Shown: piece after piece, positions 21,258-60,371 of the stretch
Position numbering within the stretch: the stretch's first letter is position 1
Layout of the letters: each line of letters starts with the position of its first letter
Assembly (NCBI GenBank): GCA_965112735.1
Contig: OZ218954.1
Location: 3,720,001-3,784,000 of the forward strand
Reading direction: 5' to 3'
Origin: Phaeosaccion multiseriatum
Taxonomy: Eukaryota; Protista; Ochrophyta, other classes
DNA: 64,000 bases
Made by a program: the position numbers and the translations under genes
Notes under the pieces: model-generated
Databases searched by the model: none
What the model was told of the DNA's origin: nothing
The model's input: the letters and a program-made list of their open reading frames with translations, nothing else

Positions 21258-21291
<34 letters not shown>

Positions 21292-23039: not shown

Positions 23040-23093
<54 letters not shown>

Positions 23094-23463: not shown

Positions 23464-23518
<55 letters not shown>

Positions 23519-23627
23519 CTCGGGCTCGGGTTCAGGCCCCACGGGGGGGCAGGCTTGTCCCTCGTCTCCTTTCTCTCCTTCGTCTGCTTCGCATCTTTTG
23601 TCTCCCGGCGTGCCCCCGTCGTTCTGA
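21804..23627 (+). CDS. Hypothetical single-exon low-complexity protein (polyQ/A/H, (GS)n tail)
   Basis: Open frame of about 607 codons from ATG 21804. Non-repetitive islands [11 protein letters not shown] and [16 protein letters not shown] flank disordered tracts. Confidence 0.6.
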
Positions 23628-35100: not shown

Positions 35101-37239
35101 TCTCTCCATCTGTACCTTTCTCCCATCGTCTCTCGCTTCCTCCTCCCCTCTCCCTAACCCCACTCCCTCCCTCTCTCCCTCCCTCCCCTCCTTTCCTCCC
35201 TCCCTCCCTCCCTCCCTCCCTCCCTCTCTCTCTCTCTCTACCCCAACCCAGGCACGGAGGCTGTCCGCACCTACAGCCGCAAGCTCGCTCCCCCCATGGT
35301 CACTCTTCTCAACAGGTGGGCTCTATTCACTGCCTTATGACTGCGCTATTCACTGCCTTATGACTGCTCCAATCACTGCCTTATGATTACAGCGAGCCGG
35401 AGATGCAGTACGTGGCTTTACGTAACATCAACCTCATCGTGCAGAAGCGCCCCAAGATCCTCGAGCACGAGATCAAGGTACCGTAAGGCAATGAAAGGAT
35501 GGCGCTGGAAGGATGGCACCTGAAGGATGGCACTGGATGGAGGGGGTGGCAGCAGTAGGTGGGGGGGTGAGTAGTTGGCCTTTAGCCCTCCCCACACCGC
35601 ACACCCCACAAGTTGGTGATACACCCAACACCCCACACCGCACATTCGACACACCGCTTTTGCTCTCAGGCCTCAGTCGTTAGCCCTGCCTTGTGCCCTG
35701 CCATCATCCACCGCTAACCCCTTGACTTGCCCCATATACCCATATATCTACCGACCGTGACCCCGTTACCCCGTCACCCCATTCCATGAAGGTGTTCTTC
35801 TGCAAGTACAACGACCCCATCTACGTGAAGATGGAGAAGCTCGAGACCATCATCCGCCTCGTCAGCGACAGGAACATCGACCAGGTTAGAGGAATATCGA
35901 CCAGCTTCGAGGCTTACAGGCTTAGAGGCTGCTTCTGCGGGCGTAGCATTCACCTCTGACCGCCCCACCCCGTCGCTCCGTCCCTCCCTGCCCCTCACAT
36001 TGCCGGTCCTCCACTGCCTGTCTCACCATCTGTGACTCCCCGCTGGTGCATGACTGTTTGACCAACACGCCCACTTGTGGCTCACAGGTGCTGCTGGAGC
36101 TGAAGGAGTACGCGCAGGAGGTGGATGTGGAGTTCGTGCGCAAGGCCGTGAGGGCCATCGGCCGCTGCGCCATCAAGCTTGAGAAGGCCGCTGAGAGGTG
36201 AGCGAGATAGAGGCACACAGGCATACATGCATACAGGCATACAGGCATACAGGCAAACAGGCATACAGGCATACAGGCATACAGGCATACGGACATACGG
36301 GCATACAGGCATACGGGCATACGGGCATACAGGCATACATGCATACAGGCATACAGGCATACAGGCAGACGGGCATATGGGCATACAGGCATACGGGTTT
36401 GCAGGCATACGGGCATACAGGCATACATGCATACAGGCATACAGGCACATACAGGCATACAGGCATACGGGCATATGGGCATACAGGCATACGGGCATAC
36501 GGGCATAGAGGCAGGCCTATTCGAAGCGGTCGCAGCACAGCGCACTGAATGTCGATATGCCTCCATCTACAAAATGTCGATATGCCTCCATCTACACAAA
36601 TGTCGGTATGCCTCTATCTTCTAAGTGTCCATGTGCCTCTATCTGCCCCCTCCCCCCTCAGGTGCATCAACGTGCTGCTGGAGCTCATCGAGAACCACAA
36701 GGTGAGTCAGTGAGTCAGTGAGTCAGGACAACAAGGCAGTGAATAAGGACACTAAGTCAGTGAATCAGGACACAAAGGCAGTGAATCAGGACAACAACTG
36801 AAGGTAGTGAGAGGAGGATGACTCACCCCCGCCCTCCCCTTCTCTCTGTAGGTGGAGTACGTGCTGCAGGAGGCCGTGATCGTCATCAAGGACATCTTCC
36901 GCAAGTACCCTAACCGTTACGAGAGCGTCATAGCGGTGAGTCTCTGGCAGTCAGCACCTTCCTTCCAGGTGTCTGTTTCACTCCCTAACCTCCATGGATC
37001 TCCCATTGACTTCCGTTGACTTCCGTTAACGCTGCCAGGTGCTGTGCGACAACTTGGACGTTCTTGACGAGCCCGAGGCGAAGGCTAGCATCATATGGAT
37101 CATCGGGGAGTACGCAGGTGGGTTAGTAAGGCAATGAATCACAGGGGGTGGGGGTAAATTGTCATACGCAGGTATGGCAGTGGCTGTGAGTGAGTGTGTG
37201 AGTGAGTGTGAGTGTGAGTGTGTGTGTGTGTGTGTGAGG

Positions 37240-37277
<38 letters not shown>

Positions 37278-40200
37278 AGTGGACATCCGCTGCCGCTTGC
37301 TTTGCTTCACTGCTTCTCTCCCTTCCTTCTCACCTCCGCCCATCCACTGCCATCCCCCGGTTTAGAGCGCATCGACAACGCGGACGAGCAGCTGTGGGCC
37401 TTCCTTGAAACGTTCGAGGACGAGTCTAGCGAGGTGCAGCTGCAGCTCCTCACCGCCACTGTCAAGCTCTTCCTCAAACAGCCCGACGACACCCAGGACA
37501 TGGTCAAGAAGGTGAGGCGTATGGGCAAGCAGTACTAGGTGTCAGGCAGTCAGTCGGTCAGCTTCGCTTGTGTCAGTCAGTGCCTGGTGTCAGTCAGTGC
37601 CTGGTGTCAGTGAGTGCCTGGTGTCAGTCTCACGACGCACAGGAAACGATCGAGAAGGTAGTCAGGCATGTGGGCAAGCAGTACTTGGTGTCAGTCCGTT
37701 CAACCCTACAACCCTAACCTCTCCTCTTGGCCTCTGCCCTCTGCTGCCATCTCTCAGGTGCTCCAAATGGCGACGCAGGACTCGGACAACCCGGACCTCC
37801 GGGACAGGGGCTTCGTGTACTGGCGACTGTTGAGCACGAGGTAGGGGGGCTAGGGGGAAGGGAGTGTGGTTCCTCTCCAAGGGGGTGTGTTTCTCTCCAA
37901 GGGGGTGTGTTTCTCTCCAAGGGGGTGTGTTTATCTCCAAGGGGGTGTGTTTCCTCTCCAAGGGGGTATCCTATGAGTGGCCCAAGGGGGGTGGTCTCTC
38001 GAACGCACTCAAACTGACGTCACTTATTGTCGCCTCTCCATATGACCAACAGCCCCGAGGCGGCCAAGGCGGTGGTGCTTGGCGACAAACCGACCATCGC
38101 CGACGACACATCTCAGATGGAGCCCCAACTGCTCAACCGACTCATCGGACAGGTACGCACGTCGTAAGGTTTAAGCCCCTCAGCTCTTGGCAGCGGCGGA
38201 TGGCACTGGATGGTGCAGCTAGGGAGTAATTGTCTCTCCTCTGCCCCCCCCCCTGTGTGTGTTGGAGAGTGAGTGGGTGGGTGGGTGAGGGGTTGAGTGA
38301 GTGAATGTGATTTTGGCTCGGTAATTGAATGAGTGAATGAGTGAGTGAATGTCTAGATGAGTTGTGAGGCAGCGTCTTGATATAGTCCTCCCCCCTCCTC
38401 CTCGGACGCCTCCGAACTGACCTCTGACCCCAAAACTGCAACTGTAACTGCAACTGCAACTGCAACAGATCGCCACCCTGGCCAGTGTGTACCACAAGCC
38501 TCCAGAGGCCTTCGTCCTCAAGACCACTGCAAGGGACTCGCCTTACCCCGGCGGGGACGAGGAGGGGGACGAGTACGACGACGAGTCAGGGGACGAGGGG
38601 GGAGAGGGGGGCTTCGACGACGACGGTGAGGGGGCGGAGGCGCGGAGGGAGCGAGGGGGGCGGGGGGAGGGGGAGGGGGAGCAGGGGTGATGTGGGTTTG
38701 TCTCTCCCGACAGTCCGAAGTGGAGGCCATTCTCAGTGTGCCGTTTGTTTCATTCAAGTCTCATCGGAGCCCCACTCTGTCTCGTGTGTGTGTGCCTCTC
38801 TCTCTCTCACACTTTCTGTCATTCTCTTTCTCTCTCACGCACTCTCTGTCTCTTCGCTCTCTCTCTCTCACACTGTCTGTCATTCTCTTTCTCTCTCACT
38901 CACTCTCTGTCTCTTCGCTCTCTCTCTCTCCATTTCCCTGCTCTCCTCAGAGGGAGAGGGAGAGGGAATGACGTCATCTTCTACCCAGGGGGGTGGAGAA
39001 GTCGACCTCCTCGATATGGGCATGGGGGACCTCAGCGTGTCTCAAGGGGGTGGAGGAGCGCCTCCCCAGGGGGGCCTCCTTGGAGATCCCCTGGGGGGCT
39101 TCGGCAGCAGCCTGGGGGGGGGTGTGGCAGGGCCTCCCCAGGGGGGTGTGCCCAAGGTGTTGGTGTGTCCGGCGGAGCAGGGGCAGGGCGTTGCGTTGCA
39201 AGCAGCCGTCTATGTCAGCAATGGTGAGTGAGTGAGTGAGTGAGTAAGTGAGTGAGTAAGTCAGTGAGTGGGTGAATGAGTGAGTGAGTGAGTGAGTGAG
39301 TGAGTGGGTGAGTGAGTGAGTGAGTGAGTGAGTGAGTGGGTGGGTGAGTGAGTGAGTGGGTGAGTGAGAGAGTGAGTGAGTGAGAGAGTGAGTGAGTGGG
39401 TGAGTGAGTGAGTGAGTGAGTGAGTGAGTGAGTGAGTGAGTGAGTGGGTGAGTGAGTGAGTGGGTGAGTAAGTGAGTGAGTGGGTGAGTGGGTGGGTAAG
39501 TTAGTGAGTGAGTGAGTGGGTGGGTGAGCTAGTGAGTGGGTGAGTAAATGAGTGAGTGAGTGAATGAGTGAATGAGTGGGGTAGGGAGAGGCTGGATGGA
39601 GGGAGACGCTGGACTCGCGTTCCGGCCTCCCTCTCCCCTCCCCCCTCTCCCGCAACTGACCCCGCCATCCCCCCATCCACTGCCATCCACTGCCATACAC
39701 TGCCACCCCCACCAGACGCCCCCGGCTGCGGGCTCGTGCTGGACCTGTCTGTGTCCAACAGCGGCTGCGCTGCCCCCGTGACCGGCCTGGCCATGCAGTT
39801 CAACCGTAACCCCCTGGGCATCGTGCCCGCACAGCCCACCCTCTCCTTCGCCTCCCCCCTGGAGGTGGGGCAGAGCAGCATCCACACAATGCCTCTCGGC
39901 CTTGACCCAAGCATGCTCGTGCCCATCCCCCCGGGGCAGGCGCTTGCCCCCCCCCCGGGGCTCTGCATCCAGGCGGCCATGAAGAACGCCGCCACAGGGG
40001 GCGTGTCTTACTTTTCGGTGCCGCTCACCCCGGGGGGACTCGTGACCCGGGGGGGCGCGCCGCTCTCGCAGGAGGCCTTCATCGGCGTTTGGAAGGCCTC
40101 CGCACAGGAGGTGAGGGGGGGGATGGCAGCGGATGGGGGATGGGGGGGGGGTGGCAATGGGGGGTTTGCCTTTTTCTCTCTCTGTGTGCCTTTGTTCCAT

Positions 40201-41286: not shown

Positions 41287-43727
41287 TCACTTCTGGAACA
41301 CGAGTAGGAAGTTGTTGGCGGGCATCTCTTCCTTCGCCACGAAGCGGAAACCCGCGGCAGCGGCCTTCTCCTGCACATCCTCCAGGTCACTGCACACAGT
41401 TGGAGTACAGTTTAGCAGTCACAATTGGCACACAGGAGGCACAGAGAGAAGCGGGAGGGAGGGGAGAGCTGCAATGGTCAAGGCCCTCTTTAGGGTTAGT
41501 CCTTCTTTAGGGTTAGTCCCTCTTAGGGTCACTTCCTCTGAGGGTTAGTCCCTCCGACATAGCAAGCTGAATCTGAGGTGTAGCTCACTCACTCACCCAC
41601 TCACTCACCCACTCGCTCACTCACTCACTCACTCACTCACTCACTCACTCATTCACTCACTCACTCACTCACTCACTCACCCACTCACTCACTCACTCAC
41701 TCACTCACTCACTCACTCACTCACTCACTCACTCACCGGATGCCGTAGCTTGTGTCTCTGTCCCTGAGGCTCCTGTCGAAGTCGGCGTTACTCTCTGTGG
41801 TGCACTTGCCGCCCACCTTGAAGGGCCCGTAGATGAACATCATGCCCCCCCCCCGTCCACTGCCATCCCCCGGCCCATCCTTGCACGCTTGCCCAGCCCC
41901 CTTTAGAAGGCCTTCCATCACATCGTAGGGCGCTGCAGCACAGGCATATGGGCAGCGGTAGGGAGATGGAGAGGGGGAGGATCGGTTGATTGCATTGCTT
42001 GCGTATTGCGTGGGTCAAGCCCCCCCCCGAGCAAAGGCAACACTAGGGACTGGGCAGGGCGGGGTAGGGCAAGGCCAAGGGCACGCACTACCTTCCTCTG
42101 CCTTCCACTGCCTTCCATTGCCTTCCTCTGCCTTCCACTGCCTTCCACTGCCTTCCATTGCCTTCCTCTGCCTTCTACTGCCTTCCACTGCCTTCCTCTG
42201 CCTTCCGCTGCCTTCCACTGCCTTCCACTGCCTTCCACTGCCTTCCACTGCCTTCCACTGCCTTCCCAGCCCCTCCCTCCCTCCCTCCCTCCCTCCTCAC
42301 CAATATGCACCATGTTGCAGCAGAGCAGCAAGTCGATGGACTTGGGCCCCACCCCCCACTCCGAGAAGGGCGTGGAGGCGTCGAGCGTGAGAGGCGCGTC
42401 TACGCAGGGCAGCGCTGATGTGTAAGCCTCAACACTGGCCCGGCACCTCTGTTGCCATCGCAAACATCGAGCATATCCACATCGAATATCGAGAGGGTTA
42501 AGGCGTGTAGAGCATGTCGATATCGTGCGTCGAACATGGAGTGAAGCGAGCGTCAGTGTGCTGAGGGGGGAGGTCTACACCAAGAGTCGGACACGCGTTG
42601 GTTGTGGCTGTGTTCGTGCATTCCAGCCCCTCCGTCACTCATTCAATTACTCATAGACTCCCTCACTCCCTCCCTCCCTCCCTCACTCCCCTCTCTCCCT
42701 CACTCACGGGATCGAAGTCGCTGGGAGTCCACTGCACATGAAGCTGCGGAGCCATAAAATGGGCATGCTGCCCGGTACCCTTCACAGCCGCAGACCGACA
42801 AGTTGGTGATACACGAGGAGGAGGAGGAGGAGGAGGAGGAGTGGGGAGAAATTGAGTGCGGGACACCACAGCAGCAAGGGCCTCAAGTGTTTCCCCATCG
42901 CGGGATGCCCGCGGCTCCTCCCCAGTCAGCAGGAAGAGGGCCTGACTGACTGCCCCGCCGCTTAGACACTTCCACACATAATACAAACGTACTTACCGAA
43001 GCGATCTCAAGGACCCTGACCAAGGCAATGCGTGCCATCCAGAGAGAGGGAGGGTCCATATAGAGAGAGGTGGAGGGAAGCATTGGGCAATACACGAGAA
43101 AGAGAGGTGGAGCGAAGTATTGGTGAATACACGAGAAAGAGAGGTGGAGGGAAGTATCGGTCAATACGCGAGGGTAGAGGGCAGTTTCAATACGCAAGGC
43201 CAGAGGCCTTGGTTGCCAAGCGCGTCGGTCAGTAGGGCATTACCGAGGGAAGGAGAAGAGCATGCAGACGACTTGGCGAGAATGGGAGTCGACAACCAGC
43301 CAACTCCCCACACTCCCTTCCTCTCTCCGCCCCTCACTCTCTATTCATCCTTACCACTCATCCACTCCCTCACTCCACTCGCTCACCTCAGCTATTCATC
43401 CCTACCACTCATCCATTCACTCATCCACTCGCTCACCTCAGCTTTGGGGCGCCTTGTGGGGGACTGACGGCCTCCGGGACGTACTTGCACAGCATCTCAA
43501 AGATGGGGTCCTGTGAGATGTGCATCCATCAGCAGTGAGGGTCTCAGTGTCTCTCTATCATGCGCAAGCACACCCTCGCACGGACCCAAGCCACACACAG
43601 AGGCACACACACACACACGCACCTTGTTCCTGTCGGTGGCGGGTGCGAATTTCTTATTGTCCGTCTCCTCCAGCAGCTTCTCCCAGCCCGTCTTGGGGGC
43701 AACGCCAGCAGCCGGCGCATCGCTCAT
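41287..43727 (-). CDS. METTL26: DUF938 family SAM-dependent methyltransferase (METTL26-like); ~7 exons
   Basis: Motifs APATDRNK|DPI, VLEIAS|GTGQHA, WTPSDFD, CCNMVHI, FIYGPFKVGG..TTESNADFDRSLR..YGIR|DLE and EMPANNFLLVFQK*. Confidence 0.9.
42095..42266. repeat. Intronic 10-bp satellite (CCTTCCACTG)n, ~17 copies
   Basis: Tandem units visible in the sequence. Confidence 0.9.
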
Positions 43728-45148: not shown

Positions 45149-46537
45149 AAAGGCACGGAAGATGCAGTCATGCAGATGCAGTGCAGGTGCAGTCATGAAG
45201 ATGCAGTCATGCAGGTGCCGCTCGTGTGCCTCCCTAGGACTGGGCTTTGATTGATTCCTCCAAGTCCATCTCTCCCCCTTTGCACGGGACCGGCCTCTCC
45301 AGCACATACATGTACATTCTCTCATGAGAGGGAGGGGAGGGGGATGTGCTCGTATCAATGACGGGACTCACACAGCCGGACTTGGCTTGGAAACTTGGTC
45401 AGTCTCATATATCATGGACTTGGCTTGGACCTTTTTCAGTCTCATCATATCACTCTCACCTCCCCTCCTTTGTAAGTATGATACGTAAAAAGGGAAGGGA
45501 CAGAAAAATTAAAGGCGCGCACGGCCAAGGTGATAAGGTGGAGACGAAACGTTACTGAAAAAAAAAATCGTGAGAGTTGAGAGTTGGCACCGCACGCGCA
45601 CTTACATCAACGAGAGGTCTAGTTGGACGAGGCCGCAAAGGCAATTCAAACGAAGGCCGCAAAGGTAGTTCAAACGATGCCAGGCCAAGGGGGGCGTCGG
45701 CGCCACGCCCAAATGCAATAGCCAGAATAGCCAGCGAGCGGCAGGGCGTACTTATGTAACTTATGTGCGGATTGGGTGCCCCTGGGGATTGGGGGGTCCC
45801 AATTTGTTCCCTCGCCTCCCTCGCAGACGAGGATAATCGACGAGGCCCCCATTTTGTTTAGTTATTAGTAGTGTGGGGGAAATTAAGCCCTGCCAAGAGG
45901 GCTTGAAGAGGAGCGGCACAGAGAAGGTGAGCAGACAAGCGCGGCGCAACCATTGACGCGGACTCACGGCTGCTCTATTGCAAGAGATGAAGTCTCAATG
46001 ACTAGGCGTAAAGCAGGCGCCAGTGACACAAAGTGCGGAGGTTGAGGCAACCGCCTTACGCCCTGACCAACCAGACCCCCGCCTACCTTCCTTTTCTCCC
46101 TCCTTCCCATGCTTGCACGTCAGTCAGTGCTGCAGTGAATAGGGTTTTTGGGCTCCCCTCACCGTTTTGGTCCCTCGGCCGGCCCTCCGCTCTCTCGTCC
46201 CTCCTTCCCTTCTTCTCTGTCCCTCTCCCGTTCCTCTTAGAAGGCCAAGTCAACAATTCCATTCCGCCTGAGCCTGCGCTGCTCGACTCTGTGCTTGGCC
46301 GCCATGACGCAGTGGTAGCCAAGCGCATCGGTTGCGAGTGGCGAGTAGCCGAGCCTGGCTGGTGTCTCACCTCCCTCGAGTAGCCTAGCTGGTGTCTCAC
46401 CGGTGTGTCACCTCCCTCGTCGGCTACGGGGCGTGCGGCTGGCTTCGTGGCGGGAGGTCTCCTCTGGCGTTGGGTGGTGCCTGTCTTGCTCATCTGAGCT
46501 GCCTGGAAGGCTGGGCGAGTCGAGCGGGGGAGACAGC

Positions 46538-48070
46538 ATGGTGACGAAGAAGGAGCGTGCGAAGGACAAAAGAAAAAAGTTGGAGGGGTTTCAAAAAGCG
46601 ATGGGTGAGGACAGGGTCAACGATATACGCATAGCGGTGTCCAAGACCCCTGGCAGCAAGGATTTCAAGGATGGTGATGACGCCCACCAGCTTTGGTTTA
46701 AGCACTTCGACGCCTTACGGATGCGAGGCGTCAGAGCCGCGGAAAGAAAAAGCGAAGAAGAGGGACGCCTTCTTACCAACGAAGAGAGGGGCATCATTAT
46801 CGAGCAAGCCAGGGCCCTTATCCCCGAGGGGCCCACGAGTACGGAGCTGGCCGACTATCCGACCTTCAACCCTGGGTGGAACCCCCCGGTCGAAACTTTC
46901 GAGGACTGGTATGCCTTCAAGGCTGGCGTTGAGGGTCATGGCAACCAAGGATCCACTCAGCCCTCCAGCAGCAGTAGCAGTGGCGGCGGTGGCAGCGGTG
47001 GGGGCGGCGGCAGCGCGCCGTCCAAGAAGAAGAAAGGCCAAAAGAAAGGAGGGGCGAGAGCAGTCAAGGAAGAGAAGCCTGAGCCGTCCAAGAAGAAAGG
47101 CCAAAAGAAAGGAGGGGCGAGGGCAGTCAAGGAAGAGAAGCCTGAACCATGCAAGAAGAAGAAAGGCCAAAAGAAAGGAGGGGCGAGAGCAGTCAAGGAA
47201 GAGAAGCCTGAGAGCGCCAAGGGTGTGTCTGTGCCTGGACGAGTAGCGAAGCGAGGAAGAGGAGGAGCGTGTGACAGCCCCGCCCACCCTTGGAGGACCG
47301 ACAAGAAGCCCAAGCGCGAGCACACCAACACCATGGGCAACATGGACAAGATGGGCAAGATGGACATGAAGCACCCTGCCGCCGCGCTGACTCAGGAGGC
47401 TGACTTTGAGCAGTTTGAGCGCCTCGAGTGGGGAGGCACGCCCCTGCTGGACGAGAGCGTCTTGCTGGAGGACAGCGTCTGGCTGGACGAGAGCGTCTTG
47501 CTGGAGGACAGCGAGGCACAAAGCGAGACGCAGGAGGTGCCGTTCGTTCCCGCAGACTCCACCTTGGAGAGCTGGCTTCAAACCGCAGATCCTCAGCCCT
47601 TTCTGCGCGAGGGAGCACAGCTCAGCACGATTACGAGCCCGACAGAGCCGAGCCCGAGCCTCACGGACTTGCCCACCTTCTTCGGCCCCGAGGGTGAGGG
47701 GGAGGTCTGGGCCTCTTCCTCGCCCTCTCCGCCCTGCCCATCGACGTCTCCTCCTCCTACGACAGCGACGCTGCCCGTGGCTGACTCGGAGCTGGGAGGG
47801 GAGCATAGCGACTCGGAGCCCCTCCTCATGCCCCTCCACCTACCCCAGTCCGTCATGATGATGAGCTCGGAGAGGATCCTGGCGGCCCCGATGGGCGCCG
47901 TCGTGGTGGCACCGCACGAGCAGCAGTTGGTGATACAAGAGCAACAGCAGCAGCAGCAGCAGTCATACAGGCAGCAGCAGGTCTTCAAGGCCTGGACATT
48001 GGAGGCGCTGCCCCTCTCGATGGTGCTGGCATTTCTTGACGCGTGTGGTGATGATCGGCATGAGGCTTGA
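46538..48070 (+). CDS. Orphan family A, copy A1 (intronless; N-terminal globular region, Lys-rich NLS-like repeats, acidic/Pro region, polyQ)
   Basis: Intact ORF, paralogous to 50451-52154 and 56162-57964. The ATG in MVTK is shared by all three copies. Confidence 0.75.
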   Translation: MVTKKERAKDKRKKLEGFQKAMGEDRVNDIRIAVSKTPGSKDFKDGDDAHQLWFKHFDALRMRGVRAAERKSEEEGRLLTNEERGIIIEQARALIPEGPTSTELADYPTFNPGWNPPVETFEDWYAFKAGVEGHGNQGSTQPSSSSSSGGGGSGGGGGSAPSKKKKGQKKGGARAVKEEKPEPSKKKGQKKGGARAVKEEKPEPCKKKKGQKKGGARAVKEEKPESAKGVSVPGRVAKRGRGGACDSPAHPWRTDKKPKREHTNTMGNMDKMGKMDMKHPAAALTQEADFEQFERLEWGGTPLLDESVLLEDSVWLDESVLLEDSEAQSETQEVPFVPADSTLESWLQTADPQPFLREGAQLSTITSPTEPSPSLTDLPTFFGPEGEGEVWASSSPSPPCPSTSPPPTTATLPVADSELGGEHSDSEPLLMPLHLPQSVMMMSSERILAAPMGAVVVAPHEQQLVIQEQQQQQQQSYRQQQVFKAWTLEALPLSMVLAFLDACGDDRHEA

Positions 48071-49047: not shown

Positions 49048-49227
49048 GCCGTGCCAACAGTGCCCAGTGCGGGGATGGGCTTCTTCAGAGCCCTGCTGTG
49101 CCCCGAGGAGAGAGTGATGCTCGGCCCCGGGGGGGAAGTGCTGCCCCCCGGGGGTAGCTTGACCGCGCTGAGCGACAAGGATGTGCTGGAGATGCTCCCC
49201 TCCTTCGAGGAATTCATGCAGTTGTAG
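49048..49227 (+). pseudogene. Family B 3' fragment (B0), last ~59 codons only
   Basis: AVPTVPSAGMGFFRALLCPEE...SFEEFMQL* is near-identical to the B1 and B2 ends. It is truncated at the inversion junction. Confidence 0.85.
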
Positions 49228-49407: not shown

Positions 49408-49628
49408 TGTGTAGAGGGCCCGCTAGGAACCCGTTTAGAAGGGGCGGGGGGGAGGCCATCAGCGCAAACTCCAATTGCCAATAATCGATTTCACGCACGC
49501 CCCCACGTACTCACTGACTGCTCTTCGTAACAACACCATATATAAACTTACATAAACTTACTGCTCCCTCGAGGGCAGCAGAGCGGCCGTTTGCTTGGGC
49601 CAGACGGCTGCCGAACAAGAGCAGGCCC

Positions 49629-50223
49629 CACTGCCTCACTGCCTCACTGCCTCACTGCCTCACTATCTCACTACCTCACTGCCTCACTACCTCACTGCCT
49701 CACTGCCCCACTGCCTCACTGCCTCACTGCCTCACTGCCTTACTGCCTCACTGCCCCACTGCCTCACTGCCTCACTGCCTCACTGCCTCACTGCCTCACT
49801 GCCTCACTGCCTCACTGCCTTACTGCCTCACTGCCTCACTGCCTCACTGCCTCACTGCCTCACTGCCTCACTGCCTCACTGCCTCACTGCCTCACTGCAT
49901 CACTGCTCACTGCCTCACGCGCCTCACTGCCTCACTGCCTCACTGCCTCACTGCCTCACTGCCTCACTGCCTTACTGCCTCACTGCCTCACTGCCTCACT
50001 GCCTCACTGCCTCACTGCCTCACTGCCTCACTGCCTCACCGCCTCACTGCCTCACTACCGCACTGCCTCACTGCCTCACTGCCTCACTGCCTCACTACCT
50101 CTCTGCCTCACTGCCTCACTGCCTCACTGCCTCACTGCCTCACTGCCTCACTGCCTCACTGCCTCACTGCATCCCTGCCTCACTGCCTCACTGCCTTACT
50201 GCCTCACTGCCCCATTGCCCCAC
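49629..50223. repeat. (CACTGCCT)n satellite, ~74 units
   Basis: Tandem 8-mers. Confidence 0.97.
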
Positions 50224-50450
50224 TCGACCGCTCTCAACCCCACTAGCCTCCACTCGACCGCTTGACCCCAGTGACCCCAGTGGGACGTGCTTGACCCCAG
50301 TGACCCCAGTGGGACGTGCATGAGCAGGCTGGTCTGATGGTCTGCTGCCAGCATTCTAAACTCTCGACCTCCCTTTACTATTTCAAGTCGATCTATTGAT
50401 CCCACACGACCCTCCTGCCAGTAGCCTAGCTAGCGCCTCTCATGACTCTG

Positions 50451-50567
50451 TCAAGCCTCATGCCAAGCATCAAGACACGCGTCAAGACACGCCCGCGCCA
50501 TCGAGAGGGGCAGCGCCTCCAATGTCCGTATCTGCCGCTGCCTGTAAGACTGCTGCTGCCTGTATGA

Positions 50568-50631
<64 letters not shown>

Positions 50632-52154
50632 TCTTGTATCACCAACTGCTGCTCATGCGGTGCCACCACGACGGCGCCCATCTGGGCCGCCAGGATCCTC
50701 TCCGAGCTCATCATCATGACGGACTGGGGTAGGTGGAGGGGCATGAGGAGGGGCTCCGAGTCGCCATGCTCCCCTCCCAGCTCCGAGTCAGCCACGGGCA
50801 TCGTCGCTGTCGTAGGAGGAGGAGACGTCGATGGGCAGGGCGGAGAGGGCGAGGAAGAGGCCCAGACCTCCCCCTCACCCTCGGGGCCGAAGAAGGTGGG
50901 CAAGTCCGTGAGGCTCGGGCTCATGAGGAGCAGGAACTCCGAGTCGCCATGCTCCCCTCCCAGCTCCGAGTCAGCCATGGGCATCGTCGCTGTCGTAGGA
51001 GGAGGAGACGTCGATGGGCAGGGCGGCGAGGGCGAGGAAGAGGCCCAGACCTTCTCCTCACCCTCGGGGCCGAAGAGGATGGGCAAGTCCGTGAGGCTCG
51101 GGCTCGGCTCTGTCGGGCTCGTAATCGTGCTGAGCTGTGCTCCCTCGCGCAGAAAGGGCTGAGGATCTGCGGTTCGAAGCCAGCTCTCCAAGGTGGAGTC
51201 TGCGGGAACGAACGGCACCTCCTGCGTCTCGCTTTGTGCCTCGCTGTCCTCCAGCAAGACGCTCTCGTCCAGCCAGACGCTGTCCTCCAGCAAGACGCTC
51301 TCGTCCAGCAGGGGCGTGCCTCCCCACTCGAGGCGCTCAAACTGCTCAAAGTCAGCCTCCTGAGTCAGCGCGGCGGCAGGGTGCTTCATGTCCATCTTGT
51401 CCATCTTGCCCATCTTGCCCATCTTGCCCATCTTGCCCATCTTGCCCATCTTGCCCATGGTGTTGGTGTGCTCGCGCTTGGGCTTCTTGTCGGTCCTCCA
51501 AGGGTGGGCGGGGCTGCCACGCGCTCCTCCTCTTCCTCGCTTCGCCTCTCGTCCAGGCACAGACACACCCTTGGCGCTCTCAGGCTTCTCTTCCTTGACT
51601 GCTCTCGCCCCTCCTTTCTTTTGGCCTTTCCTCTTCTTGGACGGCGCGCTGCCACCGCCGCCCCCACCCCTGCCACCGCCGCCACTGCTGCTGCTGCTGC
51701 TGCTGCTGCTGCCACTAGAGGGCTGCCTGGATCCTTTCTTGGGCTTTTTGCCATGACCCTCAACGCCAGCCTTGAAGACATTCCAGTCCTCGACAGTTTC
51801 CACCGAGGGCGACCACCCAGGGTTGAAGGTCGGATAGTCGGCCAGCTCCGTACTCGTGGGCCCCCCGGGGATAAGGGCCCTGGCTTGCTCGATAATGATG
51901 CCCCTCTCTTGGTTGGTAAGAAGGCGTCCCTCTTCCTCGCTTTTTTTTCCCGCGGCTCTGACGCCTCGCATCCGTACGGATTCGAAGTGCCTAAACCAAA
52001 ACTGCTCGATCTCAGTACGTATCTTCCAACACCTGCTGCCAGGGCTCTGGGACACCGCTATGCGTACATCGTTGACCTTGTCCCGACCGTGCACTTCTTG
52101 AAGCCTCTCCAGCTCTGCTCTTTTGCTTGCCGCACCCTCCTCCTTCGTCACCAT
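50451..52154 (-). CDS. Orphan family A, copy A2 (567 aa)
   Basis: Intact ORF carrying two copies of a 61-aa internal repeat. Confidence 0.75.
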
Positions 52155-53283
52155 GCTGTCTGTCTCCCCCGCTCGACTCGCCCAGCCTTCCAGGCAGCGC
52201 GCTCAGATGAGCAAGGCAGGCACCAGCCAACGCCAGATGAGGCCTCCCGCCACGCAGCCAGCCACACCCCCCGAAGCCGACGAGGGAGCTGAGACAGATG
52301 CGCTTTGACTACCACCGCGTCAAGGCGGTGATGTGCAGAGCCGAGCAGGGCAGACTCAGCAGCAGCAGGAGCGAGGAATGGAATCGTTGCTTGACTTGTT
52401 GGCCTTCTTGTGCTTCTTGTTGTAGTACTAGGCCTTACAGCTGCGGACACATTTCCAGACGGGGCGAGTGGGGGGGTGGGGGTTGAGCGTGCTTGTCCTT
52501 GGCCATCATCAGATTTCCCGCCTTGCTTTTGACTTCTTGCTTCTTCTCGCTCGCAAAACTCAGACTTTCTTTGTCTAGGCAACTCACCTTCTTCTTCTCC
52601 CCCACTAGGCTGTTCCTCTTGTCTTTTCTCTACGTCCCTCGATCTCCCTGGCAGTATGGAAAAGAGGAACGGGAGAGGGACAGAGAAGAAGGGAAGGAGG
52701 GAGCGAGTCGACAGCGGCCGGCCGGCCGGCCGAGCGAGCGAGCACCAATACGGTGAGTCGAGGGGAGCCCAAAAAACCCTATCCACTGCAGCACTGACTG
52801 ACGTGCAAGCATGGGAAGGAAGGAGAATAGGAAGGTGGGCTGGGGCCTGGTTGGTCAGGAAGGCTTGCGTAATAAGGTCCGCACTTCGTGCTCTAGTACT
52901 GGCTGCTATAGACACAAATTTCTCTCTTTCTCTTTCCTTTCTTTTTCCGTGTGCCCGCGTCACTGCTTGCGCCGCGCGGGTCTGCTCACCTTCTCTGTGC
53001 CGCTCCTGTTGTAGCCCTCTTGGCAGGGCTTGGTGAGGCAGGGCTTGGTGTCCAAGAGGAGAGTACTTCAGCGTTGCAAAATCATTTGTGATTGTGATGA
53101 ATGTTTTCACCATGATCCGCAAATCTGTGAGGAGAAAAGTTTCGAGACCCCTAGAGGACCCCCAGGGGGGACGCCGTTCAGAAAAGGTAAAGCATTCCCC
53201 CCTATGCCACTGGCAGCTTGGCCTTCCCCCCTATGCGGTCCACTGGCAGCTTGCACTTGGCCTTCGAAGAAGCACCCTCAGGC

Positions 53284-54752
53284 ATGGCGAACAAGGCGGG
53301 GAACAAGTCGGGGAACAAGTCGGGCGGCAGCAGGAAGAGAACTAAGAAGGACAGAGGTAGCAGCAGCAGCAGCAGCAGCAGCAGGAAGAAGCCCAAGAAG
53401 GCTCTTCCACTGGGGTGTCAGTTCCGCCATCATTGCAGCAGTGCTCCTTTGCAGAACAGGTGCTGCCCATGGTCAAGGCCTTCGAGCAGGGCGTCAGATG
53501 CTTGGAGGCCAGATTCTGTGAGGTAGGAGGAGAAGAGCTGCCGCCCTTCAGCCCCACCACTGCTGGCACAACGACGGCGTTGACGGACACACCATTGGCA
53601 GCACTGCTCCACCAGTCCCAGCAACAAGCCCAACGCCAACACGAAGGCCAGCAAGAAGGCAGTGTAGAGGAAGCACTTCTCGACGCGTTCCAGCAATACG
53701 TGCGGCAGCTGCTGGAGAGGCCCCTGCTGCTGTGCACGGTGGAGGACGAGGTGGCGCTGCGAGGGGTGGGGCGGCGATGGGCTCCCTCCCCAAAGGAAAT
53801 GCTCTCTCAGGTGCAGGAGCTGAGGGCCGAGGGGGAGGGCCTCGGGGAAAAGCTCCAAGACGTCCTCCTTCGGTGGCAGGCGAGCACGAGTGCGAGGCCT
53901 ACTTCTTGCACTCCGGAGCAGCAGGGGGGGCTCCCCATGTACACGAAGAGAGGGAAGGAAGGGGAAGAGCACCAGTGCCAGCAGCAGGAGAGCAAGCTCA
54001 ACCACGAGACCAAGACCAAGGATGCCAACAAGAAGGAGAAGGCCGCCCCTCTTCTTGGCATCGAAGGGAAGGAGGTCGACGAGGCGGCTCTCCACCTCCT
54101 GCGCATCCCCCCCCCGCCTCCTCTCAGCAGGACGATGTCCATGCAGCTCCCGGAGAAGGAGAAGGAGAAGCCGTGTGAGAAAGAGGCACAGCAGGGGGAG
54201 GTGATCAGGGCCTCCTCCAGCAAGAAGGAGGGGGGGCAGTGGGAGGCGGAAGCGGCGGAGAAAGCGCCGCCTCCCAGTCTGGCGCCGGCCGAGGAGGAGC
54301 AGCAGGGCCAACAACTAGCAGCGGTGTAGCAACAACACGCTCAACAACAAGTGGTGGCCTCCACCTGTGCCGGTGCTGCCGCTGGTGACGGGGTAGACTC
54401 GGAGGCGGAGGAGCAGCAGCAAACAGAGCGGCAGCAAACAGGGCGGCAGCAAACACAGCAGCAGCAAGCAGAGCAGGCCACGCAGCAGGAGAAGGCAGCA
54501 GAGGGAGGGGCCTGCCGCAGCAGTACCGACCAAAGCTCCGGCCTGAGCTGGGGCACGGACCTGCCCCTCGAGGCCGTGCCAACAGTGCCCAGTGCGGGGA
54601 TGGGCTTCTTCAGAGCCCTGCTGTGCCCCGAGGAGAGAGTGATGCTGGGCCCCGGGGGGGAAGTGCTGCCCCCCGGGGGTAGCTTGACCGCGCTGAGCGA
54701 CAAGGATGTGCTGGAGATGCTCCCCTCCTTCGAGGAATTCATGCAGTTGTAG
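53284..54752 (+). pseudogene. Orphan family B, copy B1; frameshift and premature stop
   Basis: Relative to B2 there is a 4-bp deletion near 53395 (CCCAAGCAAGAAGG to CCCAAGAAGG) and GAG to TAG at 54327-54329. Confidence 0.8.
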
Positions 54753-55164
54753 GCATATGGGTGTATATAGGCAGACGACTTTGGAGGCTGGCGACTTGTT
54801 GACTGGCCCTAATAGGAATCAACCAGAGACTTAGGTGCACTGGCGGCCGGGTGGGGGGTGCACATATGGGGGCGAAGCGGGGACGCGCGCGTGTGTATGT
54901 GTGTGCGTGTGTGTGTGTGTGCGCGTGTTTGTGCGTGTGTACGTGTGTAGAGGACCCGCTAGGAACCCGTTTAGAAGGGGCGGGGGGGAGGCCATCAGCG
55001 CAAACTCCAATTGCCAATACTCGATTTCACGCACGTCCCCACGCACTCACTGACTGCTCTTCGTAACAACACCATATATAAACTTACATAAGCTTACTGC
55101 TTCCTCGAGGGCAGCAGAGCGGCCGTTTGCTTGGGCCAGACGGCTGCCGAAGAAGAGCAGGCCC

Positions 55165-55914
55165 CACTGCCTCACTGCCTCACTGCCTCACTGCCCCACT
55201 GCCTTACTGCCTCACTGCCTCACTGCCTCACTGCCTCACTGCCTCACTGCCCCACTGCCTCACTGCCTCACTGCCTTACTGCCTCACTGTCCCACTGCCT
55301 CACTGCCTCACTACCTCACTGCCTCACTGCCTCACTGCCTCACTGCCTCACTGCCTCACTGCCTCACTGCCTCACTGCCTCACTGCCTCACTGCCCCACT
55401 GCCTCACTGCCTCACTGCCTCACTGCCTCACTACCTCACTGCCTCACTGCCTCACTGCCTCACTACCTCACTGCCTCACTGCCTCACTGCCTCACTGCCT
55501 CACTGCCTCACTGCCTCACTGCTTCACTGCCTCACTGCCTCACTGCCTCACTGCCTCACTGCCTCACTGCCTCACTGCCTCACTGTCGAACTACCTCACT
55601 GCCTCACTGCCCCACTACCTCACTGCCTCACTACCTCACTGCCTCACTGCCCCACTGCCTCACTGCCTCACTGCCTCACTGCCTCACTGTCTCACTACCT
55701 CACTGCCTCACTACCTCACTGCCCCACTACCTTTCTGCCTCACTGCCTCACTGCCTCGCTGCCTCACTGCCTCACTGCCTCACTGCCCCACTTCCTCACT
55801 GCCTCACTATCTCACTGCCTCACTGTCTCACTACCTCACTGCCTCACTGCCTCACTGCCTCCCTGCCTCACTGCCTCCTCCCTGCCTCACTGCCTCACTG
55901 CCCCATTGCCCCAC
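55165..55914. repeat. (CACTGCCT)n satellite, ~94 units
   Basis: Tandem 8-mers at the same position in the unit as the 49629 array. Confidence 0.97.
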
Positions 55915-56161
55915 TCGACCCCTCTCAACCCCACTAGCCTCCACTCGACCGCTTGACCCCAGTGACCCCAGTGGGACGTGCTTGACCCCAGTGACCCCAG
56001 TGGGACGTGCTTGACCCCAGTGACCCCAGTGGGACGTGCATGAGCAGGCTGGTCTGATGGTCTGCTGCCACCATTCTAAACTCTCGACCTCCCTTTACTA
56101 TTTCAAGTCGATCTATTGATCCCACACGACCCTCCTGCCAGTAGCCTAGCTAGCGCCTCTG

Positions 56162-57964
56162 TCAAGCCTCATGCCAACCATCAAGACACGCGTCAAGACA
56201 CGCCCGCGACATCGAGAGGGGCAGCGCCTCCAATGTCCGTATCTGCCGCTGCCGGTAAGACTGCTGCTGCCTGTATGACTGCTGCTGCTGTTGCTCTTGT
56301 ATCACCAACTGCTGCTCGTGCGGTGCCACCACGACGGCGCCCATCGGGGCCGCCAGGATCCTCTCCGAGCTCATCATCATGACGGACTGGGGTAGGTGGA
56401 GGGGCATGAGGAGGGGCTCCGAGTCGCTATGCTCCCCTCCCAGCTCCGAGTCAGCCATGGGCATCGTCGCTGTCGTAGGAGGAGGAGACGTCGATGGGCA
56501 GGGCGGAGAGGGCGAGGAAGAGGCCCAGACCTCCCCCTCATCCTCGGGGCCGAAGAAGGTGGGCAAGTCCGTGAGGCTCGGGCTCATGAGGAGCAGGAAC
56601 TCCGAGTCGCCATGCTCCCCTCCCAGCTCCGAGTCAGCCATGGGCATCATCGCTGTCGTAGGAGGAGGAGACGTCGATGGGCAGGGCGGAGAGGGCGAGG
56701 AAGAGGTCAAGACCTCCCCCTCATCCTCGGGGCCGAAGAAGGTGGACAAGTCCGTGAGGCTCGGGCTCATGAGGAGCAGGAACTCCGAGTCGCCATGCTC
56801 CCCTCCCAGCTCCGAGTCAGCCATGGGCATCGTCGCTGTCGTAGGAGGAGGAGACGTCGATGGGCAGGGCGGAGAGGGCGAGGAAGAGGTCAAGACCTCC
56901 CCCTCATCCTCGGGGCCGAAGGGGGGGGGCGAGTCCGTGACGCTCGGGCTCGGCTCTGTCGGGCTCGTAATCGTGCTGAGCTGTGCTCCCTCGCGCAGAA
57001 AGGGCTGAGGATCTGCGGTTCGAAGCTGACGCTCCCAGGCGGAGGGCCAGCCCATGTTTACGAGGGCGAGTGGCGTCTCCTGCGTCTCGCTTTGGGCCTC
57101 GCTCTCCTCCTCCTCCTCCTCCTCCTCCTCCTCCTCCTCCTCGAGGTCAGCCGGAGTCAGCTCGGCGGCGGTGTGCTTCATGTCCATCTTGCCCATCTTG
57201 CCCATCTTGCCCATCTTGTCCATCTTGCCCATCTTGCCCATCTTGTCCATCTCGTCCATGTTGCCCATCTTGCCCATGGTGTTGGTGTGCTCGCGCTTGG
57301 GCTTCTTGTCGGCCCTCCAAGGGTGGGCGGGGCTGTCACGCGCTCCTCCTCCTGCTGCTGCTGCTCCTGCTCCCCCTCCTCTTCCTCGCTTCGCCTCTCG
57401 TCCAGGCACAGACACACCCTTGGCGCTCTCAGGCTTCTCTTCCTTGACTGCTCTCGCCGCCCCTCCTTTCTCTTGGCCTTTCTTCTTCTTGGACGGCGCG
57501 CTGCCGCCGCCCCCACCGCTGCCACCGCCGCCACTGCTACTGCTGCTGGAGGGCTGAGTGGATCCTTGGTTGCCATGGCCCTCAACGCCAGCCTTGAAGA
57601 CATTCCAGTCCTCGACAGTTTCAACCGAGGGCGACCACCCAGGGTTGAAGGTCGGGTAGTCGGCCAGCTCCGTACTCATGGCCCCCCGGGGGATAAGGGC
57701 CCTGGCTTGCTCGATAATGATGCGCTTCTCGTCGTCGCTCTTGATTTCCTTGCAGCCTCCGGCGGCTCTGACGCCTTGCATCCGTACGGATTCGAAGTGC
57801 CTAAACCAAAACTGCTCGATCTCAGTACCTGTCTTCCAACACCTGCTGCCAGGGCTCTGGGACACCGCTATGCGTACATCGTTGACCTTGTCCCGACCGT
57901 GCACTGCTTGAAGCCTCTCCAGCTCTACTCTTTTGCTTGCCGCACGCTCCTCCTTCGTCACCAT
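56162..57964 (-). CDS. Orphan family A, copy A3
   Basis: Intact ORF from the MVTK ATG at 57964, with three copies of the 61-aa repeat. Confidence 0.75.
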   Translation of the reverse strand: MVTKEERAASKRVELERLQAVHGRDKVNDVRIAVSQSPGSRCWKTGTEIEQFWFRHFESVRMQGVRAAGGCKEIKSDDEKRIIIEQARALIPRGAMSTELADYPTFNPGWSPSVETVEDWNVFKAGVEGHGNQGSTQPSSSSSSGGGGSGGGGGSAPSKKKKGQEKGGAARAVKEEKPESAKGVSVPGREAKRGRGGGAGAAAAGGGARDSPAHPWRADKKPKREHTNTMGKMGNMDEMDKMGKMGKMDKMGKMGKMGKMDMKHTAAELTPADLEEEEEEEEEEEEESEAQSETQETPLALVNMGWPSAWERQLRTADPQPFLREGAQLSTITSPTEPSPSVTDSPPPFGPEDEGEVLTSSSPSPPCPSTSPPPTTATMPMADSELGGEHGDSEFLLLMSPSLTDLSTFFGPEDEGEVLTSSSPSPPCPSTSPPPTTAMMPMADSELGGEHGDSEFLLLMSPSLTDLPTFFGPEDEGEVWASSSPSPPCPSTSPPPTTATMPMADSELGGEHSDSEPLLMPLHLPQSVMMMSSERILAAPMGAVVVAPHEQQLVIQEQQQQQSYRQQQSYRQRQIRTLEALPLSMSRACLDACLDGWHEA

Positions 57965-58895
57965 GCTGTCTCCCCCGCTCGACTCGCCAAGCCTTCCAGG
58001 CAGCTCAGATGAGCAAGGCAGGCACCAGCCAACACCAGAGGAGGCCTCCCGCCACGCAGCCAGCCACACCCCCCGAAGCCGACGAGGAAGCTGAGACACC
58101 AGCTACTCGACTTGCGCCACCGACGATGCGCTGTGACTACCACCGCGTCAAGGCGGTGATGTACAGAGCCGAGCAGGGCAGACTCAGCAGCAGGAGCGAG
58201 GAATGGAATCGTTGACTTGGCCTTCTTGTGCTTCTTGTTGTAGTACTAGGCCTCACAGCTGCGGACACATTTCCAGAAAGTTAGTGTAGGGGGGGGTTGG
58301 GCGTGCTTGTCCTTGGCCATCAGATACCCCCGCCTGTCTAGGCAACTCATCACCTTCTTCTTCTCCCCCACTAGGCTGTTCCTCTTGTCTTTTCTCTACC
58401 TCCCTCGATCTCCCTGGCAGTGTGGAAAAGAGGAACGGGAGAGGGACAGATCAGAAGAAGGGAAGGAGGGAGAAATTCGACAGCGGCGGCCGAGCGAGCA
58501 ATACGGTGAGGGGAGCCCAAAAAACCCTATCCACTGCAGCACTGACAGACGTGCAAGCATGGGAAGGAAGGAGAATAGGAAGGTGGGCTGGGGCCTGGTT
58601 GGTCAGGAAGGCTTGCTTAAAAGGTCCGCACTTTGTGCTCTAGTACTGCTATAGACACAAATTTCTCTCTTTCTCTTTCCTTTCTTTTTCCGTGTGCCCG
58701 CGTCACTGCTTGCGCCGCGCGGGTCTGCTCACCTTCTCTGTGCCGCTCCTGTTGTAGCCCTCTTGGCAGGGCTTGGTGAGCAGGGCTTGGTTTTGTGTTT
58801 TTGAGCACAACTCCCAGGGGGGACGACGGGTTTTAGGGTGAAGCACTGGTTAAGCATTTCCCCCCTGCTTTCATTTTTTGTTAAGCACCCTCAGC

Positions 58896-58958
58896 ATGGC
58901 GACCAAGGCGGGGAACAAGTCGGGCGGCAGCAGGAAGAGAACTAAGAAGGACAGAGGT

Positions 58959-59001
<43 letters not shown>

Positions 59002-60371
59002 AGAAGCCCAAGCAAGAAGGCTCTTCCACTGGGGTGCTAGTTCCGCCATCATTGCAGCAGCGCTCCTTTGCAGAACAGGTGCTGCCCATGGTCAAGGCCT
59101 TCGAGCAGGGCGTCAGATGCTTGGAGGCCAGATTCTGTGAGGTAGGAGGAGAAGAGCTGCCGCCCTTCAACCCCACCACTGGTGGCACAACGACGGCGTT
59201 GACGGACACAGCATTGGCAGCACTGCTCCACCAGTCCCAGCAACAAGCCCAACGCCAACACGAAGGCCAGCAAGAAGGCAGTGTAGAGGAAGCACTTCTC
59301 GACGCGTTCCAGCAATACGTGCGGCAGCTGCTGGAGAGGCCCCTGCTGCTGTGCACGGCGGAGGACAAGGTGGCGCTGCGAGGGGTGGGGCGGCGATGGG
59401 CTCCCTCCCCAAAGGAAATGCTCTCTCAGGCGCAGGAGCTGAGGGCCGAGGGGGAGGGCCTCGGGGAAAAGCTCCAAGACGTCCTCCTTCGGTGGCAGGC
59501 GAGCACGAGTGCGAGGCCTACTTCTTGCACTCCGGAGCAGCAGGGGGGGCTCCCCATGTACACGAAGAGAGGGAAGGAAGGGGAAGAGCACCAGTGGCAG
59601 CAGCAGGAGAGCAAGCTCAACCACGAGACCAAGACCAAGGATGCCAACAAGAAGGAGAAGGCCGCCCCTCTTCTTGGCATCGAAGGGAAGGAGGTCGACG
59701 AGGCGGCTCTCCACCTCCTGCGCATCCCCCCCCCGCCTCCTCTCAGCAGGACGATGTCCATGCAGCTCCCGGAGAAGGAGAAGGAGAAGCCGTGTGAGAA
59801 AGAGGCACAGCAGGGGGAGGTGATCAGGGCCTCCTCCAGCAAGAAGGAGGGGGGGCAGTGGGAGACGGAAGCGGCGGAGAAAGCGCCGCCCCGCAGTCTG
59901 GCGCCGGCCGAGGAGGAGCAGCAGGGCCAACAACTAGCAGCGGTGGAGCAACAACACGCTCAACAACAAGTGGTGGCCTCCACCTGTGACGTTGCTGCCG
60001 CTGGTGACGGGATAGACTCGGAGGCGGAGGAGCAGCAGCAAACAGAGCGGCAGCAAACAGGGCGGCAGCAAACACAGCAGCAGCAAACAGAGCAGGCCAC
60101 ACAGCAGGAGAAGGCAGCAGAGGGAGGGGCCTGCCGCAGCAGTACCGACCAAAGCTCCGGCCTGAGCTGGGGCACGGACCTGCCCCTCGAGGCCGTGCCA
60201 ACAGTGCCCAGTGCGGGGATGGGCTTCTTCAGAGCCCTGCTGTGCCCCGAGGAGAGAGTGATGCTCGGCCCCGGGGGGGAAGTGCTGCCCCCCGGGGGTA
60301 GCTTGGCCGCGCTGAGCGACAAGGAGGTGCTGGAGATGCTCCCCTCCTTCGAGGAATTCATGCAGTTGTAG
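58896..60371 (+). CDS. Orphan family B, copy B2 (intact, intronless; N-terminal NLS-like basic patches, helical core, Q/E-rich linker, hydrophobic C-terminal motif)
   Basis: Open ORF MATKAGNKSGGSRKRTKK...MLPSFEEFMQL*, head-to-head with A3. Confidence 0.72.

Follow-up and report, generated by a model that had tools for sequence, protein, structure and literature searches.

Evidence for positive selection on an N-terminal patch in mosaic, lineage-specific paralogs, a candidate partner-recognition element

The closest described systems to the locus analysed here are the homeodomain mating-type pairs of basidiomycetes, the genes of the MHC and certain protist gene families. Homeodomain mating-type pairs (bE/bW of Ustilago, HD1/HD2 of Coprinopsis) are arranged head-to-head, with several paralogous copies per locus. 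Their products are intracellular, nuclear proteins in which roughly the first 60–110 residues are hypervariable and fix partner specificity, and the remainder is constant. In the MHC, the peptide-binding region is a recognition patch kept diverse under positive selection while gene conversion homogenises the rest of the gene. Protists, in turn, carry lineage-specific tandem families that evolve fast, such as ROP5 of Toxoplasma or the Toxoplasma families named A–E. Multigene families are already known to combine mosaic paralogs with a single patch under positive selection, and the mechanism is not new. Here, we describe three translated, intronless and lineage-specific paralogs that, in the reading we consider fairly probable, have been shaped by gene conversion together with positive selection on a patch, the N-terminal segment being a candidate partner-recognition element. 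If this is true, the locus is a clean natural case of gene conversion and positive selection side by side in one short gene, with the leader, the synonymous sites and the downstream codons serving as three internal neutral yardsticks.

The window, which is the whole stretch of 64,000 nucleotides that was analysed, has a GC content of 59%, is rich in microsatellites and is depleted in CpG (observed/expected 0.61). It carries ordinary eukaryotic genes with GT-AG introns (Table 1), and by these introns and the CpG depletion it is a nuclear eukaryotic locus. Long introns and short exons give its genome a non-fungal look, unlike the hosts of the fungal mating-type systems. Where matches of the ankyrin exon span a quarter of the query or more, they are to generic repeat proteins only, at no more than 36% identity. 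A search with the beta-adaptin appendage exon returned no match of a length that passed the search filter. A tRNA and Rfam search of the window returned no match, and neither a dinoflagellate spliced-leader relic nor a telomere-type repeat was found in it when both were looked for.

A local duplication cluster spans 45.9–60.4 kb and holds three copies of one intronless ORF, referred to as A1, A2 and A3. A2 and A3 each sit in a tandem unit about 5.6 kb long, together with an ORF (B) transcribed divergently from them and a (GCCTCACT)n array, such that A and B genes are arranged head-to-head. A1 is an inverted copy relative to the A2/A3 tandem. The B copies are 98–99% identical (1.4% divergence between B2 and B3) and have not diversified along with A; the B2 copy is broken. 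The long inverted repeats in the window are the paralogs themselves only, leaving the unit without terminal repeats, and transposase, reverse transcriptase (RT) and integrase Pfam domains were absent from A, B and 120 window ORFs outside the A/B cluster. A transposable-element ORF was rejected on these two grounds.

Table 1. Coordinates of the A-family genes, their segments and neighbouring genes in the window
Feature	Position	Strand	Remarks
Prohibitin-2-like gene	from 24973		
Beta-adaptin gene	about 32.6–40.1 kb		
DUF938 gene	41.7–42.9 kb		
Ankyrin exon	in window		
5′ leader of A1, conserved, non-coding	46404–46537	+	ATG-free; 7.5% diverged from A2
A1 CDS	46538–48070	+	510 aa, intronless; stop is TGA; 0 in-frame stops
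Hypervariable patch, A1 (codons 5–60)	46550–46717	+	30/31 changed codons non-synonymous vs A2
Rest of N-terminal module (codons 62–137)	46721–46948	+	invariant IIIEQARALIP and ELADYPTFNPGW stretches
63-nt Lys-rich repeat (21 residues)	47023–47211 in A1	+	units in A1/A2/A3 about 3/1/1
C-terminal about 35 codons, second A1-specific divergent stretch	47963–48070	+	omega about 1.8, not significant
A2 CDS	52154–50451	−	567 aa; convergent with A1
Patch, A2 (codons 5–60)	51975–52142	−	codon comparison
183-nt Pro/Ser/Thr-rich repeat (61 residues)	A3 56417–56951; A2 50754–51105	−	units in A1/A2/A3 1/2/3
A3 CDS	57964–56162	−	600 aa counted from conserved ATG; tandem with A2
Patch, A3 (codons 5–60)	57785–57952	−	5 non-synonymous, 0 synonymous vs A2
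A3-specific replaced segment (codons about 69–85)	57722–57757	−	12-nt deletion; omega 1.4–1.7, dS 0.21–0.28

Database searches place the A family among orphans. A Pfam-A search of A and B gave sub-threshold noise only and no domain, and a PDB profile search gave no match at E ≤ 10. No match came from a word-indexed scan across 5.8 billion proteins, from metagenome protein and DNA scans or from a prokaryote genome scan. An exhaustive phmmer search with the N-terminal module (the first 153 residues of A1) against 1.84 billion representative proteins found nothing at E ≤ 0.001. A look-up showed the exact A sequences to be absent from the protein collection, and five conserved peptide motifs, sought in the full text of the literature, gave no match. 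Because no database relative appeared at any threshold reached, we treat A as a new sequence family, which on these searches is orphan and lineage-specific.

Most of the A protein is low-complexity, comprising Gly/Ser runs, Lys-rich repeats, (Met-Gly-Lys)n, an acidic stretch, Pro/Ser/Thr repeats and polyGln. Only the first 135 residues and the last 60 or so are non-repetitive and well conserved. Four in-frame internal repeats, including the Lys-rich 63-nt repeat, vary in copy number between paralogs, and the polyGln tract measures 7, 21 and 5 in A1, A2 and A3, respectively. The protein may be largely disordered, and its N-terminal module of about 135 residues is probably helical. An AlphaFold2 model built from the 3-sequence alignment is unreliable (pLDDT 49); it places helices at residues 4–22, 24–36, 48–75 and 81–93, which at this pLDDT is only a hint, and in the same model (pLDDT 49) the densest variable stretch, residues 41–50, lies between predicted helices. 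Helical-face periodicity of the variable sites is not significant over residues 4–68 (P = 0.56), and reaches P = 0.016, uncorrected, in residues 4–23 only. By inspection, the first 60 residues contain no signal peptide or hydrophobic stretch, and they begin with the highly charged MVTK(K/E)E.... A secreted effector or surface antigen was rejected in the absence, by inspection, of an N-terminal signal peptide or membrane segment. The charged N-terminus, the NLS-like Lys-rich repeats and the acidic and polyGln regions suggest instead an intracellular, possibly nuclear protein.

According to the initial annotation, about half of the N-terminal residues differ between A1 and A2, with a single synonymous codon among the changes and near-identical stretches downstream. 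An ungapped codon comparison bears this out. Over codons 1–61, A1 and A2 share 30 identical codons and differ by 30 amino-acid replacements and one synonymous change (TTG/CTG at Leu15), with no indels and no stops, and further downstream they show no mismatches over 47363–47650. The divergent peptides and retained scaffold residues quoted in that annotation also match the copies as given. Over the same codons, A1 and A3 compare similarly (32 identical, 1 synonymous, 28 amino-acid changes), and A2 and A3 are far closer to each other (56 identical, 0 synonymous, 5 amino-acid changes). The 45 nucleotide differences between A1 and A2 in the patch are distributed 23/15/7 over codon positions 1/2/3. 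All five changes between A2 and A3 fall at sites that also vary relative to A1, against a chance expectation of about 0.03 in this set of three sequences only, and at sites 13, 20 and 45 A1, A2 and A3 all differ from one another. Five replacements at codons that were already variable hint weakly at ongoing or recurrent change in the patch.

The edges of the patch are sharp. A1 and A2 mismatch at 10 of 134 positions in the leader, 45 of 183 in the patch and 16 of 228 in codons 62–137 (Fisher p = 7e-5 and 7e-7 for the patch versus its flanks), and omega is about 1 in codons 62–137. The first ATG of A1 has an A(−3)/G(+4) context. The A2 leader contains two 4-nt insertions in the 60 nt preceding the conserved ATG, because of which the 5′ leader cannot be in frame.

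Counting, simulation and likelihood methods all yield more replacement than silent change in the patch. By the Nei–Gojobori method (NG86), A1 versus A2 gives a dN of 0.366 and a dS of 0.076 (omega 4.8, one-sided Fisher p = 0.005). We then simulated the same 45 substitutions, with the same spectrum, placed randomly on A1 with stops disallowed: 10.0 ± 2.3 synonymous differences were expected versus 2.67 observed (P = 0.0004), and the probabilities of at most one purely synonymous codon and of at most seven third-position changes were 0.015 and 0.0018, respectively. A pairwise codon-substitution likelihood model (F3x4, kappa free) in which the patch has its own synonymous rate returns an omega of 7.8 (likelihood-ratio test (LRT) versus omega = 1, p = 0.0015), and one in which the synonymous rate is shared with the rest of the gene returns a patch omega of 4.5 (p = 3e-8). 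In this model, the synonymous rates of the patch and of the rest of the gene are indistinguishable (p = 0.48), and their omega values differ (p = 1e-16). The likelihood results for A1 versus A3 agree with those for A1 versus A2. The neutral yardsticks also agree with each other, with the leader 7.5% diverged, a patch dS of 0.076 and a rest-of-gene dS of 0.08. At non-synonymous sites the patch has diverged more (42/146) than the leader (10/134, p = 5e-6) and more than the synonymous sites elsewhere in the gene (22/280, p = 4e-8).

The patch was chosen post hoc for its amino-acid divergence, and a Bonferroni correction for about 7 non-overlapping windows leaves the most conservative tests at p of about 0.003–0.01. 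Because there are only three paralogs and A2 resembles A3 in the patch, the data amount to essentially one long branch. Localised positive selection on codons 5–60 is well supported by these codon comparisons for one contrast, A1 versus A2/A3. Of the strong diversifying selection proposed in the initial annotation, the excess of dN over dS in codons 1–61 is supported by counting, simulation and LRT; a family-wide statement would go beyond three paralogs and essentially one branch. The replacements in the patch do not exceed random ones in how radical they are: 57% change class, versus 67% expected.

Several mutational routes to such a patch were considered and rejected. Hypermutation is not indicated by the spectrum, which is the same inside and outside the patch (Ts:Tv 23:22 versus 36:36 elsewhere), with CpG transitions making up 3 of the 45 patch differences. 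Compensated frameshifts were discarded because the patch is without indels. A diversity-generating retroelement target was likewise dismissed: the changes are not adenine-specific (17 of the 45 differences coincide with an adenine in A1 and 10 with one in A2), and no RT domain was found among 120 window ORFs outside the A/B cluster (44–61 kb) or in the A and B ORFs.

The direction of these tests depends on the reading frame. Because the in-register antisense frame turns the data into purifying selection, the coding frame was tested by independent means. Were the antisense ORF the real coding frame, the sense non-synonymous excess would reflect purifying selection on the antisense protein in a patch that is old and has escaped conversion; most changes fall at sense codon position 1, which is where the antisense frame has its wobble position, and read this way the same 45 differences give a dS of 0.71, a dN of 0.19 and an omega of 0.27. 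The antisense ORFs (A1 region 46490–46705 and 46715–47839 on the minus strand; 50733–52292 and 56396–58012 on the plus strand) are long, reaching 519 aa in A2 and 538 aa in A3, but such in-register antisense ORFs are expected opposite GC3-rich genes that avoid TTA, CTA and TCA. The sense frame has no stops in A1, A2 or A3, whereas the antisense frame has 2–3 per copy; in A1, the patch is split from the remainder by a TAA (sense TTA at codon 60), and the A1 remnant is without an ATG. Sense GC at codon positions 1/2/3 is 0.61/0.47–0.52/0.73–0.76, compared with 0.62/0.50/0.68 in the ankyrin exon. When position-specific base composition is modelled from four conserved exons in the window, the sense frame ranks first of six in every copy, also for codons 1–61 alone, and the antisense frame fits the exons worse in every copy and segment. 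The two 4-nt insertions in A2 shift the frame of the antisense ORF at its 3′ end and are harmless to the sense gene. The antisense frame further needs a dS of 0.7 in the patch between flanks only 5–8% diverged, and it would have changed more often at its position 2 (15 changes) than at its position 1 (7), an unusual pattern for purifying selection. We consider this frame decidedly improbable as the coding one. A start at the conserved Met62, with codons 1–61 as a fast-evolving 5′ untranslated region, draws on the retention of Met62 in all three copies and on the lack of homologues for the segment upstream of it. Against such a start, the patch has no indels in 183 nt at 25% divergence, where the leader just upstream has two 4-nt insertions; its frame is open in all three copies, its composition score prefers frame +0, and its substitutions are periodic by codon position (23/15/7, P = 0.0018). 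The first ATG moreover has its A(−3)/G(+4) context after an ATG-free leader, and codons 1–4 are identical. A Met62 start is highly unlikely. Very little probability also attaches to the A family being no functional protein gene at all, that is, decaying duplicates or repeat DNA patterned by an unrecognised mutational process. An omega of about 1 across most of the gene, the lack of database homologues and the broken adjoining B2 copy all fit such decay, but three ORFs of 510–600 codons, sharing their ATG and their stop, remain open in between at 5–10% divergence, and the mutation spectrum of the patch is unremarkable. About a dozen indels separate the paralogs at this divergence, all in frame, and random substitutions at the observed density left the ORF open in <1% of trials (P(no stop) < 0.01). 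Internal repeat periods within the genes are all multiples of 3 nt (9, 18, 63 and 183), whereas those outside genes are mostly such as 4, 8, 10, 29, 37 and 38. Background omega outside the patch is 0.53, 0.66 and 1.02 for the three pairs, with similar values in the antisense frame. Because omega in the rest of the gene ranges from 0.5 to 1.4, with no frame-specific sign of purifying selection, the case for translation is built on ORF integrity and base composition rather than on conservation. The claim that the ORF is translated is upheld in this form, the sense frame being the best coding frame by stops, base composition and indel pattern, and coding in the sense direction is well supported by these sequence properties.

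The paralogs are clearly mosaic, and the closest pair changes along the gene: A2 is nearest to A3 both within the patch and at the C-terminus, A1 is identical to A3 over 46916–47008, and A1 matches A2 throughout the downstream tract free of mismatches. As judged from these alignments, gene conversion between copies holds most of the gene and the 5′ leader at 92–100% identity. The mosaicism also speaks for an alternative in which the N-terminal patch is old or imported, either as a conversion tract from a divergent outside paralog or as a segment that escaped homogenisation; there would then be no positive selection, and the skew would stem from chance or from constrained synonymous sites close to the start codon. 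Other divergent patches behave as replaced or old segments should, since A3 codons 69–85, the acidic middle of A3 and the C-terminus of A1 have a raised dS of 0.12–0.29 with an omega of 1.3–1.8. In the N-terminal patch, by contrast, dS (0.076) equals the value found in the leader and in the other codons of the gene, and because it matches these yardsticks the patch is not simply older DNA. Omega = 1 is rejected there even with a patch-specific synonymous rate (p = 0.0015; simulation P = 0.0004), and because third-position divergence (7/61) matches the flanks, special synonymous constraint is not needed. No donor copy for any patch, including A3 codons 69–85, is present in the window. An old or imported N-terminal patch is accordingly an unlikely account. 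The further replacement in A3 that the initial annotation had added to the same signal is present, with its 12-nt deletion, and is a separate event with a raised dS (0.21–0.28) and an omega of about 1.4–1.7; it looks like a segment replacement, distinct from the N-terminal selection signal.

In the reading we favour, positive selection and gene conversion would have acted on the same gene. A1, A2 and A3 would be translated paralogs, one copy inverted and two in tandem, and gene conversion homogenises most of the gene and the 5′ leader. In codons 5–60, replacement substitutions have been fixed about 5–8 times faster than silent ones, with silent divergence staying at the neutral level. Positive selection would have separated the first two or three predicted helices of A1, together with loop residues 41–50, from those of A2/A3, and selection would have opposed homogenisation of the patch between A1 and A2/A3. 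The N-terminal segment would then be a putative partner-recognition element conferring different binding specificities among the paralogs, and a specificity surface, as the initial annotation proposed, would be a reasonable but tentative interpretation of the patch. If this is true, the first 60 residues mark the functional end of a family that no database annotates, and offer a handle on what the family does. It is conceivable, although we rate it as very unlikely, that the whole head-to-head A/B cassette is a recognition system of the self/non-self or driver/suppressor type. In such a cassette, the N-terminal helices of A would choose the partner, be it the B protein, another A paralog, a selfish element or a pathogen factor; positive selection would create new specificities, and gene conversion would keep the rest of the cassette uniform.

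Compared with known systems, the locus resembles homeodomain mating-type pairs in its head-to-head A/B arrangement, in the multiple copies at one locus, in the variable N-terminus and in the suggested intracellular, possibly nuclear location of its product. It differs from them in that A and B have no homeodomain (no Homeobox match at E ≤ 10) or other Pfam domain, and a homeodomain mating-type pair (HD1/HD2) was rejected for lack of a homeodomain in either protein. Further differences are that the near-identical B copies, one of them broken, are not co-diversified with A, and that the variation in A is found between paralogs of one genome and not between alleles. As in MHC-type families, the A paralogs are mosaic with near-identical tracts, and dN exceeds dS in one short segment where dS is not higher. 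Unlike MHC genes, A is represented here by three copies only, and it has no sequence or fold relationship to them and no sign of secretion or membrane location. Unlike protist tandem families, A lacks a signal peptide by inspection, and "family A" is used here as a label only, distinct from Toxoplasma family A. Like those families, the A copies are tandem and inverted local duplicates with no outside relatives and a high dN/dS.

The closest pair among A1, A2 and A3, three intronless orphan paralogs of which A2 and A3 lie in tandem and A1 is an inverted copy, shifts along the length of the gene. A2 is nearest to A3 at both gene ends, A1 equals A3 in the tract 46916-47008 and A1 equals A2 without a single mismatch over about 290 nt at 47363-47650 (both in A1 coordinates). 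This switching is direct evidence for gene conversion between the inverted and tandem A copies.

The A genes also carry four in-frame internal repeats (63-nt Lys-rich, 9-nt Met-Gly-Lys, 183-nt Pro/Ser/Thr and polyGln), and the copy number of these varies among the paralogs, so that the A1, A2 and A3 proteins differ in length (510, 567 and 600 aa, respectively). A short motif, Gln-Gln-Leu-Val-(Ile/Val/Met)-Gln, occurs once near the C terminus of each A protein (about 47900-47960 in A1), and an unrelated ORF of 653 codons at 21666-23627 (+) contains it four times.

A second orphan ORF, ORF B, stands head-to-head with A2 and A3. A Pfam search with the protein of B3, the copy beside A3, returned no hits. 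Two lesions split the reading frame of B2, the copy beside A2: an indel of 4 nt close to 53393 and a TAG codon occupying 54327-54329. B2 and B3 diverge by only 1.4%, far below the divergence between A2 and A3 in the patch (codons 5-60, the amino-acid-variable N-terminal stretch). Arrays of the 8-mer GCCTCACT, each followed by 29-nt repeats at both A2 and A3, belong to the tandem unit of ~5.6 kb.

Features of the A/B locus and neighbouring genes
Feature	Position	Strand	Remark
B3	58896-60371	+	intact, about 491 aa
B2	53218-54752	+	same gene as B3, split
B 3′-end fragment	49048-49227	+	adjoins A1
A-gene internal repeats	47023-47211, 50550-50632, 50754-51105, 51392-51458, 56417-56951, 57184-57277		
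GCCTCACT array	49625-50224		75 copies, just 3′ of A2
GCCTCACT array	55161-55915		94 copies, just 3′ of A3
Prohibitin-2-like gene	24973-27500	+	
Beta-adaptin gene	32600-40100	+	
DUF938 methyltransferase-like gene	41700-42900	-	
Ankyrin-repeat exon and NYN/cold-shock-matching ORFs	4476-5507, 19238-21366	-, +	positions given for the group

Among the neighbouring ORFs, the matches to NYN and cold-shock domains are weak and sub-threshold. Genes in the window have exons of about 50 codons and GT-AG introns of about 350-700 nt, frequently filled by microsatellites. Across the whole window GC content is 59%, and a CpG observed/expected ratio of 0.61 together with an excess of TG/CA suggests that the source genome is cytosine-methylated.
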